DNA from: Orbicella franksi
Lineage: Eukaryota
NCBI GenBank assembly: GCA_964199315.1
Contig: OZ116698.1
Location: forward strand, 5,704,001-5,768,000
Direction of reading: 5' to 3'
Length of the DNA: 64,000 nucleotides
The translations under genes were made by a program, and so were the position numbers. This document shows positions 35,301 to 64,000 of this stretch, piece after piece. The notes beneath the pieces are model-generated. The model was not told where the DNA came from, searched no databases, and saw nothing but the letters and a program-made list of their open reading frames with translations. Numbering within the stretch: position 1 is the stretch's first letter; every line of letters begins with the position of its first letter.

Positions 35301-35447
35301 GCGACCCTGTAAGTAGTATAGCACAGCGATATATACGAACTGACCAATGACAGGACCCCATTCAATACATGTGACACATATCAACCAATCACAACACTTG
35401 GATTTTACACGTGACTTTTAATAGAGAACAATGGGCTACGTGACAAC

Positions 35448-35515
35448 TTCTCATAACCTAATTCCTAAAAAGTGTTCACAGTTCTCATAACCTAATTCGT
35501 AAAAAGTGTTCACAG
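35448..35515. repeat. 34-bp tandem repeat, 2 copies, near the left edge of the viral element
   Basis: TTCTCATAACCTAATTC(C/G)TAAAAAGTGTTCACAG twice, 1 mismatch. Confidence 0.85.
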
Positions 35516-35544
35516 TTCATTCTCAGTCATTCTTTCAAAGTTCT

Positions 35545-37020
35545 CTACCAAGGGTTAGAGCTACTTGTGGTTTCCTCCCTAGGGTTAATGTCATTAATAC
35601 AACATTCCACTAAACGTCTGTGCTGACAATCAGGATTCGCACATGTGGTGACATGGGGGCAGTTCTGGTTTCTGAGTAGGTGCTTACAGCGTGGATTTCC
35701 ACAACGAATTAAGCGACGATTGGGTGCTTGATTTAGTGGTGCTTGATTTATTGGTTCATCCTCTAGCCATTCTTCACTGTCACTGTATTCAGGACTAGTG
35801 TTAGAGCTACTTGGGGAAGGATGAGTGATGTTGTTTGCATTCCTTGATGTTGTTGTGGGTGAACTGACAGTCGCAGTTGATGATGATGTGACTGTGACAG
35901 TGATTGCTGATGTTGGAGGTGGACTGACTGCTTGTGGGGGGGTGTTTGTCGGTGTTGTTTGTGGTGATCGGTCACTGTCTTCAGCAGGGGGAGGACTATT
36001 TGCTCTTAAATCGGAGACGTCGTCATCATCTTCCATGTCAAATGGATTGTTTTCTTGTCCGATTACTGTATGAGGAGCGGGAATGATTAAGGGTTCCCCA
36101 TGCGTGTCTCTTGCTCTTCCATCATCTGTATAAAAGGATGCTCTTAGTGATGTTGCTCCAAAGGACAAAAGAACTGGAGTTGGAATGAGTCTGGAGCGAC
36201 GACTGTTGGTGAATAAACTACGATTTGTTTCTTGAAGCGCTTGGAATATGTTACGTTCCACTACTGAGCCAGTGTAGGGGGTGTCTTCTGGATATGGAGT
36301 AATACTATGGTTTTGCGTGATCTGGATTTCTTGTACACTCACATCATTCTCTCCGATTTGATTTGGATCCGTTACAAAGATGAATTGATACTTTATGAAA
36401 CTTAGACATAATTCTAGAGCTGAAGGAATCATTCTTTCAAATATCTTGTAAATTGCAATTCTATAATTGTAAACCCAAAATAATTGACCTATTACATTGG
36501 CATGCATGTAAATACCATGAAAAGGAGAATTATGATCTCTTTGTGTTAATATGAAACTTTTCATTCTTTCTAAGAATTCATTAAAAACTTCAGAAGAAAT
36601 ATATGGAAATGCTCTCCAACTTAAATTACTTCTTGTATGTATGATACTTGCTCTTCTTGAGATCAGGAATAAATTGATGGCTGTTATACTGTCAGAGCGA
36701 CGAGCACGTAGGGTTAATTCTTCTAGGGTTAGTGAACCGCCACGTCTTCGATGACCAACAACTCTTGAACATCGTGTACGTGAAGGTATTGCGCAACAGT
36801 TTCCACACATCCTCGTTTCATTCCTTAATCTTCGGTAACAAGACTTGTGTAAATACCTTTCGCAGCATGTTTGCCTTTTACAGGCTAAAATTTCATTTGT
36901 AAGAATGTCTTCTAGACAAATGAAGCACCGATCTAATTCTTCTTCAGGTGGAATATTGAGTTGTCTCAAACTACGTCTTACTTGCGACATGTTTGTAGTA
37001 GAGTGAGCGAGTATTTTCAT
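35545..37020 (-). CDS. Viral accessory protein, 491 aa: N-terminal RING-like finger, Ser/Thr/Pro-rich region, C-terminal Cys cluster
   Basis: CFIC...CCERYLHKSC...CGNC; C-terminal CGNPRC...CPHVTTCANPDC.H...CC. Confidence 0.75.
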   Translation of the reverse strand: MKILAHSTTNMSQVRRSLRQLNIPPEEELDRCFICLEDILTNEILACKRQTCCERYLHKSCYRRLRNETRMCGNCCAIPSRTRCSRVVGHRRRGGSLTLEELTLRARRSDSITAINLFLISRRASIIHTRSNLSWRAFPYISSEVFNEFLERMKSFILTQRDHNSPFHGIYMHANVIGQLFWVYNYRIAIYKIFERMIPSALELCLSFIKYQFIFVTDPNQIGENDVSVQEIQITQNHSITPYPEDTPYTGSVVERNIFQALQETNRSLFTNSRRSRLIPTPVLLSFGATSLRASFYTDDGRARDTHGEPLIIPAPHTVIGQENNPFDMEDDDDVSDLRANSPPPAEDSDRSPQTTPTNTPPQAVSPPPTSAITVTVTSSSTATVSSPTTTSRNANNITHPSPSSSNTSPEYSDSEEWLEDEPINQAPLNQAPNRRLIRCGNPRCKHLLRNQNCPHVTTCANPDCQHRRLVECCINDINPREETTSSSNPW

Positions 37021-37075
37021 TTTGAGTCATTTTATATTGTTTGTTTGTGTTTCTAAAAATAAAAATGACAAAAGG

Positions 37076-37092
37076 GGGGATGGGGGTATCCC
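37076..37092. promoter_or_regulatory. Candidate viral divergent-promoter motif, copy 1
   Basis: GGGGATGGGGGTATCCC, identical at 62634-62650. Both copies lie between divergent ORFs and have TGAGTCA upstream. Confidence 0.45.
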
Positions 37093-37126
37093 TCCTGAAT
37101 GAATGTTTTAAAAATGTGTTTACGTT

Positions 37127-37375
37127 TTGGATTTGTTGAGTTCTCATTTGTTATTTGAGGAACGAGATGCATATGTGATGGCTCCTCCTAGAGCATGTTC
37201 AGAGACCATGGCTGACTATTTTCGTTTTAGTCGTTTAGTGGATGACGAGGAATCACGTTTTGGATACAAGTTGAAGAGAATCAGTTTTATGAGGGAAAAG
37301 TTTAAAGAGGACGAAAAGATGTTGGCTAATCTACGAGTGAGGGAGGAATTTTTTGAAAGCATTGGAATCTATTGA
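37127..37375 (+). CDS. Small viral hypothetical protein
   Basis: 82-aa ORF overlapping the next ORF; start uncertain. Confidence 0.45.
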   Translation: MDLLSSHLLFEERDAYVMAPPRACSETMADYFRFSRLVDDEESRFGYKLKRISFMREKFKEDEKMLANLRVREEFFESIGIY

Positions 37376-61775: not shown

Positions 61776-62019
61776 CTAAAAATCAAAAATAAGAATTAAT
61801 GACAGTTGATTTCAAATGATATCGGTCATTTCATAACTTCTATTCATTTTTGTTTCACAGGGCATATTTAACTGTCTTGCCGCAAAACAAACGAGAAAAT
61901 ATCATCTGGTGAACGCAATACTATCCACAAATGTCAATAGGGTCAAATAAAAATCAGACAAACAGTTCTCTTTCTCGCTCTCCAACCAAAAATCGACAAT
62001 CTGTCTCAGTCTATTTAGT

Positions 62020-62220
62020 TCATTCCATTTTTTGTCGAGTAGCATACCTCTCCTTCAAATCAGTGTACAAGAAGTAAAATACGTATCCAGCAACTCCCCA
62101 GAAGAATACGGTTCGAGGTGTAGCCTCACCTGTGAGTCTGACAATAATTGGTAAATAAAGAATGTTAATCTTCAGTTCACTCGTACTCGGTCCAGTTCGT
62201 AGCAAGGTCAATTCTATCAT
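62020..62220 (-). CDS. Small protein with one predicted TM helix
   Basis: VFFWGVAGYVFYFLY hydrophobic segment. Confidence 0.4.
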   Translation of the reverse strand: MIELTLLRTGPSTSELKINILYLPIIVRLTGEATPRTVFFWGVAGYVFYFLYTDLKERYATRQKME

Positions 62221-62232
62221 TCTTCGTTGATG

Positions 62233-62418
62233 TTAACAACCAATTTTCTCTTCACCAAAACGTAGGCATTCACAAACTGGACACCTTCTGTTATTAAAAG
62301 GTAAATTTCTCTGTTTGTCGAGTTTACAGGACCAATGAAATACGCTCTCGCAACACTTACTCCTGTAAAAACATCCCAGACTCGCATTAACCCTCTCATG
62401 ACAAATGCTACATTTCAT
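62233..62418 (-). CDS. Minimal RING-like protein, 61 aa
   Basis: CSIC...CCESVFHWSC...CPVC. Confidence 0.65.
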   Translation of the reverse strand: MKCSICHERVNASLGCFYRSKCCESVFHWSCKLDKQRNLPFNNRRCPVCECLRFGEEKIGC

Positions 62419-62633
62419 AATGAATCAATTGAGACATCGATGATGAAACACTTTTCGACAACATGGTGTATGATCTTTCCAATGAGGAGTACACGGTTCA
62501 AGACATATCAAACAATCATTCGAAGCCATGACTTACCTCGAGTCGAGTCTACAGCACACAAACCAACGCATTAAGTTCTAAGAAATATATATGAGTCATC
62601 ACGTGCTTATCTACGTCACGGAAAAGCAGACTA

Positions 62634-62650
62634 GGGGATGGGGGTATCCC
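62634..62650. promoter_or_regulatory. Candidate viral divergent-promoter motif, copy 2 (upstream of pPolB)
   Basis: GGGGATGGGGGTATCCC; TGAGTCA at 62592 and CACGTG at 62600. Confidence 0.45.
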
Positions 62651-62777
62651 CCTCTTCACGTACTAAAAAATAAAAAATGGCGGGAAAATACATAAATTCA
62701 ACCGTAAAAGTCACTGTTCCTCACACCTCCTTGGTATGTATCTACTCCATTTTTATTTTGTTCACGTTTCGATTACA

Positions 62778-64000
62778 ATGAATGAGGAATTGGACTTTGA
62801 TTGGAGCGATAAGGAAGATAACCTCGCAAATCACGCTGATAAATTGGAAAACGGATTCGACTTTGTTTTGACTCCTCACTTAGACAGACGAGTGAGACAT
62901 CTAGGAGTGAGACATCGAAATTACACTGGAAGGTTGGTTCAACATGGAGGAGCACTTGATTTCAATGCCTCCATTCAGAGAATTCTACCTCAACAATTAG
63001 AAGAAGCTGTCAGACATAGCATCGAACAACAAGTCTTAAACGATCCAGAAGTTAAAGCCGATGATTATTTGTATGTCAACCTCAATTCTAATCGATTACA
63101 TCACGGCTACCATTCTCCCCGCATGAGAGTGAGTGACTGGACCAGAAACGGTTTGAGAGCAGCAGAAATGATGCAACAGATTTCGGCCATGCTAAACTCG
63201 AATGAAAATTTTCAATTGGACGATAGTTTTTCTATCCACATTTCTCACATTCGTAATCCCAGAAACGGTGGTACAGGAAAAAGAATTCGAAAAGGACAAT
63301 TGGTCATCGAAAAGATGTTAGATCTCAAGAGAAGTGTGGTGAAGATTAACAACCAAGACGAATTGTGTTGTGCCAGAGCCATAGTCACCATGATGTCACA
63401 CGCTGACCTTGGAACAAACCATCCCGATTACGTCAATCTCAGAAAAGGTCTTCCAATTCAAGAAAAAAAAGCCAGGGCCCTACATGAAACTGCAAAAGTC
63501 CCGATAGCGAGCTGTGGCATACCTGAAATCATCAAGTTCCAAGAGGTTTTACCCGATTACAGATTGGTCGTATTCTCTATCGATCAAAATTACAGGATCA
63601 TCTACAAGGGTGTCTACCAACCCCATCGAAAAGATGTCATTCTTATCAAAGTAGGAAAACATTATCACACATGTACCTCCCTGAAAGCTTTCATGGGAAG
63701 AAATCATTTCTGTTTGATATGCGAGAAAGGCTACGATCACGACGACATGAAATCCCACAGGTGCAATGGAAGAAAATGTGGATCCTGTTTTCAAATTGAG
63801 TGTGAAGACTATCACAAAGTTCAAAAGGGAGAGCGGGCCACCTACAAGTGTGGAAGATGTCAACGAAAATTCTTTGGAACCCATTGCTTGAGTAACCACA
63901 CCAAATTCAGTGAAGAAAACGGAAAAGAAGTAAACGAAACACGCAAAAGTGTCTGTAGCAGCAAAAGAAAATGCGGCAAGTGCATGCGAATGCTTCGTCC
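62778..64000 (+). CDS. polB: Protein-primed family B DNA polymerase, N-terminal part (terminal-protein region, vOTU-like protease, Cys-rich region); runs off the window
   Basis: Open frame from ATG 62778, absent from the ORF track: LNSNENFQLDDSF...KRSVVKINNQDELCCARAIV...KHYHTCTSLKAFMGRNHFCLICEKGY. Confidence 0.88.
   Translation, partial: MNEELDFDWSDKEDNLANHADKLENGFDFVLTPHLDRRVRHLGVRHRNYTGRLVQHGGALDFNASIQRILPQQLEEAVRHSIEQQVLNDPEVKADDYLYVNLNSNRLHHGYHSPRMRVSDWTRNGLRAAEMMQQISAMLNSNENFQLDDSFSIHISHIRNPRNGGTGKRIRKGQLVIEKMLDLKRSVVKINNQDELCCARAIVTMMSHADLGTNHPDYVNLRKGLPIQEKKARALHETAKVPIASCGIPEIIKFQEVLPDYRLVVFSIDQNYRIIYKGVYQPHRKDVILIKVGKHYHTCTSLKAFMGRNHFCLICEKGYDHDDMKSHRCNGRKCGSCFQIECEDYHKVQKGERATYKCGRCQRKFFGTHCLSNHTKFSEENGKEVNETRKSVCSSKRKCGKCMRMLR

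Follow-up and report, generated by a model that had tools for sequence, protein, structure and literature searches.

The window analysed here is a stretch of 64,000 nucleotides, free of any N, from the Orbicella franksi assembly GCA_964199315.1 (contig OZ116698.1, positions 5,704,001 to 5,768,000 of the forward strand). Its right part, from position 35312 to the end, is very probably one integrated and decayed copy of a polintovirus (Polinton/Maverick), similar to the Adintoviridae of the “Alpha” type and characterised by a protein-primed family-B DNA polymerase (PolB) of the PF03175 class together with a phospholipase A2 (PLA2) gene. This copy is a dead fossil, and it is an instance of an abundant family already published from stony-coral genomes, not a new kind of virus. 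An earlier interpretation, made from the letters of the same stretch (hereafter the sequence-only reading), had also recognised an endogenous Polinton/adintovirus-like element with all hallmark modules, and we confirmed this through domain matches, the fold of the capsid protein and synteny.

Within the window, the element spans 28,689 bp (35312-64000) and runs out of it within the PolB gene. Two nested long interspersed nuclear elements (LINEs) account for about 5.5 kb and 2.3 kb of it (about 7.8 kb in total, outer bounds relative to intact orthologues), leaving 20.9 kb, in agreement with the approximately 21 kb of the sequence-only reading. The listing of open reading frames (ORFs) and the Pfam matches revealed a left arm encoded on the minus strand, with a 491-aa zinc-finger protein, a conserved gene, a zf-GRF protein and a 237-aa ORF. 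The long plus-strand block contains, in this order, small ORFs, the rve integrase, a penton-like gene, a basic 110-aa ORF, the capsid, protease and ATPase genes, then about ten further ORFs, the PLA2 gene and, finally, the ORF that runs off the window. The terminal features, the core genes and the two LINEs (for which only ORF bounds are given) are as follows:

35312..35490, left terminal inverted repeat (TIR), with the terminus at 35312, starting with AG; 88% identical to inverted right-end copies
35448..35515, pair of 34-nt subterminal repeats in tandem, at the TIR's inner edge
41971..43029, plus strand, rve integrase (Pfam rve, E 1.1e-10, above the cut-off), with two in-frame stops
43133..44099, plus strand, putative penton-like (minor capsid) gene, assigned by position, with at least one frameshift and one stop
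44798..51694, plus strand, predicted double jelly-roll major capsid protein (MCP) gene, with three in-frame stops and a nested LINE
45670..50696, plus strand, ORFs of LINE no. 1 (ORF1, endonuclease and reverse transcriptase; Exo_endo_phos, RVT_1 E 6e-37, zf-RVT)
51697..52272, plus strand, adenain-like cysteine protease, unbroken
52603..55583, plus strand, putative A32/FtsK-type packaging ATPase with a Walker A motif and one nested LINE
53214..55415, minus strand, reverse-transcriptase ORF of LINE no. 2 (RVT_1 E 2.5e-29)
60672..60953, plus strand, parvovirus-type PLA2 (PF08398, E 9.8e-12), unbroken
62778..64000, plus strand, protein-primed PolB, first 407 codons, including Cys/His motifs and a region rich in Cys; the ORF continues beyond the window

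Relatives of the element (loci designated by L numbers) were found through the genomic contexts of protease, integrase and PLA2 homologues, in ENA assemblies, JGI metagenomes and one TARA metagenome scaffold, and the homologues often lay on contigs of 0.2-3 Mb. Breaks were counted by comparing the pieces present in the window with intact orthologues from these loci. The integrase, for which public data contained 2,761 homologues, aligned at 62-65% identity over 98-99% of intact 357-aa integrases. Taken together, the capsid-gene pieces aligned with L001's intact 462-aa MCP at 50% identity and 99% coverage, and the C-terminal piece retrieved 1,355 proteins among 1.84 billion representatives, matching residues ~262-460 of proteins of about 460 aa. 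We obtained an AlphaFold2 model of the closest member of this capsid family (58% identical; aligned with 27 full-length members in all) with a pLDDT of 90.1 and a pTM of 0.88, and Foldseek matched this model to the MCPs of Singapore grouper iridovirus (SGIV), mavirus, Paramecium bursaria chlorella virus 1 (PBCV-1) and Sputnik, with E values from 1e-13 to 5e-16. The modelled fold thus predicts that the capsid gene encodes a double jelly-roll MCP. The protease had 41 homologues, the best of them (P0001) at 93% identity, and a profile built from 18 family members matched the adenovirus proteinase (1avp, E 2.1e-8) as well as S273R of African swine fever virus; the His, Cys and Gln columns, of catalytic type, were invariant or nearly so in the alignment. 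The ATPase, whose pieces extend across about 3 kb, covered 99-100% of intact 222-aa orthologues, and its PDB search gave matches at the P-loop level only. The penton-like gene matched, in two frames with one stop, the gene or genes located between integrase and capsid in L001, L004 and L005, and even the intact relatives had no Pfam match. Distant relatives carry two tandem paralogous penton-like genes at this place (L001 6104-8195; L005 11071-13129), where the window (43133-44099) and L007 have one.

LINE no. 1 is absent from the capsid genes of the relatives and LINE no. 2 from their ATPase genes. Whereas the protease, the PLA2 and the in-window part of PolB are unbroken, four core genes (integrase, penton-like, capsid and ATPase) are broken and two LINEs are inserted, so this copy cannot make a particle or integrate. 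The proposal of a real infectious virus is thus not supported by the copy in the window.

As the sequence-only reading had stated, most of the polymerase gene lies outside the window. The part inside shares 89% identity with the beginning of an intact 1,435-aa ORF (L013) and 52% with that of a 1,341-aa ORF (L006). Both ORFs carry PF03175 (E ~1e-38); the 407 in-window codons had no Pfam match. Immediately before the PolB start codon, the sequence departs from the longer ORF called in L013; L006 starts at the same Met as the PolB of the window, and we thus counted no break in this gene. At its N-terminus, PolB has conserved Cys and His motifs that would fit an OTU-like domain. Only this part of the earlier vOTU label could be retained: the region matched neither Pfam nor the PDB, by sequence or by profile, and an AlphaFold2 prediction run without alignment reached a pLDDT of 39. 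The PLA2 label, by contrast, was borne out by the PF08398 match, and the protein has more than 1,071 homologues, nearly all of them with this domain.

The left terminus was mapped by scanning metagenome contigs with a 20-nt stretch taken from the start of homology. An identical 20-nt start follows unrelated flanks in L007 and L009 (left ends) and is found inverted at the right ends L008, L011 and L013. In L007 and L009, which represent a closer copy (84-89% nucleotide identity), homology to the window exists only from ~35290-35312 rightwards. Since the shared sequence always begins at the same base after unrelated flanks, we placed the left terminus of the window copy at 35312, about 108 bp to the left of the start at 35420 in the sequence-only reading. 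Another candidate, at ~35423, came from an 11-nt match to the TIR of a distant relative (E 0.53) and was dropped, as the close copies put the terminus at 35312. Short repeats similar to the subterminal ones recur near the end of a close relative. No inverted repeats were detected by a search within the window, as is to be expected when the right end lies outside it. To the left of the terminus, three long open frames (33570-35384, minus strand) had neither a Pfam match nor a match in the relative loci; one of them crosses 35312, presumably by chance.

Both ends of the element were seen in its relatives. A complete one (ERZ26858540 ctg223588, covered by the overlapping loci L005 and L006) measures 23,379 bp and has a 316-bp TIR at 99.4% identity, AG...CT ends and a 6-bp target-site duplication (TSD), TAGGGC. 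All homologues of the accessory genes lie inside these bounds in the same gene order as in the window, confirming that the accessory ORFs belong to the element. The close relative that shares the 20-nt terminus of the window and has the intact 1,435-aa PolB exhibits TIRs of about 170 bp that are 95% identical, and the TSD CATATA; its left end L009 and right end L011, from one metagenome, both carry CATATA. The TIRs and 6-bp TSD that the sequence-only reading had advised seeking are present in the relatives, and the window copy itself displays the left TIR only. In L005, the capsid and protease genes (13549-15245) are called as shortened pieces despite the 99.4% identical TIRs, and young-looking copies are therefore not all intact. 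The same insertion, with identical flanks, is shared by one ENA assembly and several JGI metagenomes (L007 and L009 for the left end; L008, L011 and L013 for the right end), which suggests that the genome of one host species is present in these datasets.

We recovered collinearity of the window with L001, L003, L004, L005 and L006 at ~30-73% amino-acid identity. From the zf-GRF arm to PolB, five independent contigs from four datasets repeat this gene order, in one case inside TIRs and a TSD. L003 (7642-10978), the TARA scaffold, is more distant and has PolB on the strand opposite to the virion module, an arrangement not shared by the window, L004 or L006.

The size of the element could be estimated from the close copy (84-89% nucleotide identity), since the right terminus of L013 lies 3,029 bp past the base aligned with window position 64000. 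The missing right end is thus projected about 3.0 kb beyond the window, giving a whole element of ~23.9 kb net of the LINEs. In stony corals, hundreds to thousands of polintovirus regions have been reported from 30 genomes; their length averages 23.6 kb (median 21.9 kb), ~23% of them have TIRs, and the hallmark genes are expressed (Stephens, Faghihi, Moniruzzaman 2024, PMC11131425). The projected size is close to both this mean and the 23,379 bp of the complete relative, so the element is of normal size for its family, and not unusually large or expanded as had been suggested.

Several points weigh against the assignment to a polintovirus, or against parts of it. The right TIR and the TSD of the window copy lie beyond the window and are unseen. 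The OTU domain is confirmed by no tool and is unproven, and the penton is a putative one, assigned from position alone. As a single sequence, the protease falls below the Pfam threshold of Peptidase_C5. The top Pfam match of the ATPase is Pox_A32, whose cut-off of 22.8 bits is narrowly missed by the window piece and by two intact orthologues (20.7-21.9 bits). Finally, IMG/VR viral contigs scanned with the MCP, integrase, PolB and protease profile yielded no relative, so that free particles are unsupported for this lineage. We nevertheless consider the assignment to a decayed polintovirus highly probable.

The accessory ORFs are listed here in the order of their coordinates:

35545..37020, minus strand, 491-aa protein with a RING/PHD-like N-terminal finger and a Ser/Thr/Pro-rich, Cys-rich tail (PDB match to the RCHY1 RING, E 1.3e-3)
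37593..38174, minus strand, conserved gene (formerly “DEDD-like”) with one in-frame stop; single ORFs of 191 aa in L005 and 194 aa in L004
38175..39032, minus strand, zf-GRF zinc-ribbon protein (PF06839, E 1.8e-6, above the cut-off)
39001..40640, divergent ORF pair of 237 aa (minus) and 263 aa (plus), 66-67% amino-acid identity to L007/L009; in the close relative only
40730..41971, plus strand, three small conserved ORFs of 175, 111 and 98 aa upstream of the integrase; same position in L001, L004 and L005
44447..44779, plus strand, 110-aa highly basic protein (formerly “pX”), 95% identical to L002, with partial matches in other relatives
52293..52538, minus strand, RING/PHD-like ORF of 81 aa between protease and ATPase, recognised by its Cys/His pattern
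56179..57359, plus strand, 208-aa ORF and 197-aa Ser/Arg-rich ORF; the C-terminus of the latter is conserved
57365..57874, plus strand, 169-aa protein with two hydrophobic helices (formerly “SLATT-like”), 49-50% identity to L004 and L005
58171..59168, plus strand, ORFs of 144 aa and 91 aa
59172..60569, plus strand, three conserved ORFs of 115, 123 and 205 aa upstream of PLA2; syntenic in L003, L004, L005 and L013
60990..61775, minus strand, RING/PHD-like ORF upstream of PolB, with one premature stop in comparison with its orthologues (247-268 codons)
62220..62424, minus strand, fourth small RING/PHD-like ORF, 84% identity to L013

Ratios of nonsynonymous to synonymous substitutions (dN/dS) were computed pairwise against close copies, with the simple Nei-Gojobori method on the best local alignments. 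These ratios, which were measured between paralogous copies and thus reflect selection during the spread of the lineage and not at this locus, were 0.12-0.33 for the core genes, 0.21 for PLA2 and 0.19-0.66 for most accessory ORFs. Being below 1, they indicate that the accessory ORFs are real genes of the lineage.

The four RING/PHD-like ORFs are all on the minus strand and share the pattern CxxC...CC...H..C...CxxC, so the count of four RING proteins in the sequence-only reading holds at the motif level, with weak sub-cut-off support from hidden Markov models (HMMs) or the PDB for the two larger ones. The 491-aa protein is 75% identical to its counterparts in L007/L009 (dN/dS 0.39), and its L005 orthologue matches zf-RING_2 below the cut-off (E 1.7e-3), as do the orthologues of the ORF upstream of PolB (L006, E 7e-4; L013, 0.033; dN/dS 0.52). 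The 81-aa ORF had no Pfam match; it is a paralogue of 62236-62424 (BLASTP E 3e-8) and weakly matches L004, L006 and L013. The fourth ORF has a dN/dS of 0.20. The zf-GRF label was also upheld by its Pfam match: the gene is syntenic in L001, L004, L005 and L007, with a dN/dS of 0.19. In L001 (625-2628, minus strand), one frame of 668 codons combines zf-GRF with a region resembling the 491-aa zinc-finger protein, the two being separate genes in the window.

Other functional labels of the sequence-only reading stayed unproven in comparison with profiles and structures. For the “DEDD-like” gene, neither the window piece, nor the intact orthologues, nor their profile matched Pfam or the PDB, and the orthologues have a D-x-E-like motif only. 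The 169-aa “SLATT-like” protein gave no SLATT match at E values up to 0.1, and its L005 orthologue reached SLATT_1 with an E of 0.014 (15.8 bits against a cut-off of 26.3). The name pX also found no support, the 110-aa basic protein having no Pfam match. Pfam matches were likewise absent for the 175-, 111- and 98-aa ORFs and for the divergent pair (dN/dS 0.27 for the 237-aa ORF and 0.66 for the 263-aa one), which in addition had no match in the more distant relatives. In the 144-aa ORF, a 72-nt tandem duplication (58310-58453, 99% identical) produces a repeated peptide.

The stony-coral polintoviruses share with the window element and its relatives an integrated state, the MCP, the protease, PolB, the rve integrase and, putatively, the minor capsid protein and the ATPase. 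They typically measure 22-24 kb, have TIRs in part of the elements and show massive paralogous expansions. The relatives of the window element likewise reside in many copies on large contigs; the likeness is one of gene set and size. Among adintoviruses, PolB proteins with an OTU domain, PLA2 genes (initially noticed in 2013) and “Oncoid” ORFs, which are rich in Cys and lie upstream of PolB, have all been described, the OTU-like domain at the PolB N-terminus resting on structure prediction (Starrett et al. 2021, PMC8502044). The Alpha adintoviruses, with their Mayetiola-type virion module, have in common with our element a PF03175 PolB with an extra N-terminal domain and the rve integrase, as well as a PLA2 gene and a virion module that resembles that of adenoviruses; in both, Cys-rich ORFs with paired CXXC motifs directly precede PolB (PMC8502044). 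In contrast to these viruses, the PLA2 proteins here are short (93-135 aa) and do not have the fused pX-like tail of PLA2X, and the basic ORF is a separate one, placed between the penton-like gene and the capsid gene.

The likeness to mavirus is at the fold level only and extends to the rve integrase, the protein-primed PolB, the double jelly-roll MCP (Foldseek 6g44), the cysteine protease and, putatively, the FtsK-type ATPase; mavirus differs in depending on a giant virus, in having a protist host and in having neither PLA2 nor zf-GRF. Canonical Polinton/Maverick elements, in the accounts that Kapitonov and Jurka are said to have given in 2006 and Pritham et al. in 2007, measure 15-20 kb and have a 6-bp TSD, TIRs and AG...CT ends. 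Our element shares with them the core gene set and, in two of its relatives, the 6-bp TSD, the AG...CT ends and TIRs of a few hundred bp. Its length of ~23-24 kb differs from that of canonical Polintons because of an accessory left arm of ~6.5 kb and a block of ~5 kb between ATPase and PLA2. Most members of the Polinton-like viruses (PLVs) or of the virophages do not have the pair formed by a protein-primed PolB and an rve integrase, and have other replicases or a tyrosine recombinase instead. The presence of both genes in the window element does not agree with filing it among the PLVs or virophages.

These comparisons also bear on the strongest of the other explanations, namely that the element is a large virus whose accessory genome is expanded, which represents an undescribed cnidarian lineage and has a near-functional infectious genome. 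Purifying selection on many accessory ORFs speaks for it, as do the 208-, 144- and 91-aa ORFs, for which no homologue was found among the relative loci compared. It may also draw on the fact that zf-GRF, RING and two-helix proteins are unmentioned in the main text of the published account of coral polintoviruses, which names no PLA2, GRF, RING-type, zinc or ubiquitin genes (PMC11131425), and on our literature searches, which found no link between Polintons and GRF. However, the sizes given above (23.4 kb, ~23.9 kb and a mean of 23.6 kb) correspond to the family norm, the accessory genes are common to relatives at 35-75% identity, and four core genes are broken. The family is moreover very abundant in public assemblies, with the 1,355 capsid homologues among others, and both the coral polintoviruses (PMC11131425) and OTU-PolB, PLA2 and Cys-rich ORFs upstream of PolB (PMC8502044) were already in print, so the claim of an undescribed lineage is not supported. 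We thus regard this explanation as improbable.

Still less probable, to the point of being very doubtful, is a domesticated remnant in which use by the host keeps the protease, PLA2 and PolB open. These three are indeed unbroken beside the broken core genes, but a few short open genes are expected by chance in a moderately decayed copy, and the dN/dS values, as noted, do not track this locus. That unrelated mobile elements were joined by chance or by a chimeric assembly, as the density of transposons in the window (BEL/Pao, Harbinger, other integrases and LINEs) might suggest, can be dismissed almost entirely given the same order from left arm to PolB in the five independent contigs.

With the decayed polintovirus retained as the best explanation, the biology of its lineage can be sketched from the gene families. 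Intact members would replicate through the protein-primed family-B polymerase and insert through the rve integrase, producing a 6-bp target duplication, with TIRs of ~170-320 bp framing the element. The virion module would comprise the double jelly-roll MCP, the penton-like protein, the adenain-like maturation protease and the A32-type packaging ATPase, and the parvovirus-type PLA2 would aid in crossing a membrane at entry. To these would be added a conserved accessory set with zf-GRF, the four opposite-strand RING/PHD-like ORFs, the two-helix membrane protein and several other ORFs. The roles proposed for the genes of the element in entry, packaging and host manipulation are predictions made by family membership.

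Other mobile elements populate the rest of the window. A BEL/Pao-type long terminal repeat (LTR) retrotransposon lies ~3.5 kb to the left of the element (26343-31858, minus strand), with a DUF1759/DUF1758 gag-protease, Peptidase_A17, and rve with DUF5641. Further left, a 731-aa ORF (19959-22154, minus strand) combines SAP, a YqaJ-like/viral alkaline exonuclease and a PHD finger and looks like a gene of another mobile element. A PIF/Harbinger DDE_Tnp_4 transposase and a separate retroelement integrase (Integrase_H2C2 and rve) are located at 18102-18842 and 9349-9978, respectively.

A dead copy such as this one changes nothing in what is known of polintoviruses. Its value lies in an exact left terminus, a size typical of the family and counted damage, in a family that forms a sizeable share of some coral genomes. 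The annotation adds a little: in the lineage, purifying selection acts on the zf-GRF, RING/PHD-like and two-helix genes, which go undiscussed in the coral polintovirus literature searched. It is possible, although we hold it rather unlikely, that the accessory kit formed by the four antisense RING/PHD-like paralogues, zf-GRF and the two-helix SLATT-like protein is an undescribed conserved set for host interaction in polintoviruses. If so, it could indicate that animal polintoviruses interfere with the ubiquitin pathway and with nucleic-acid sensing.

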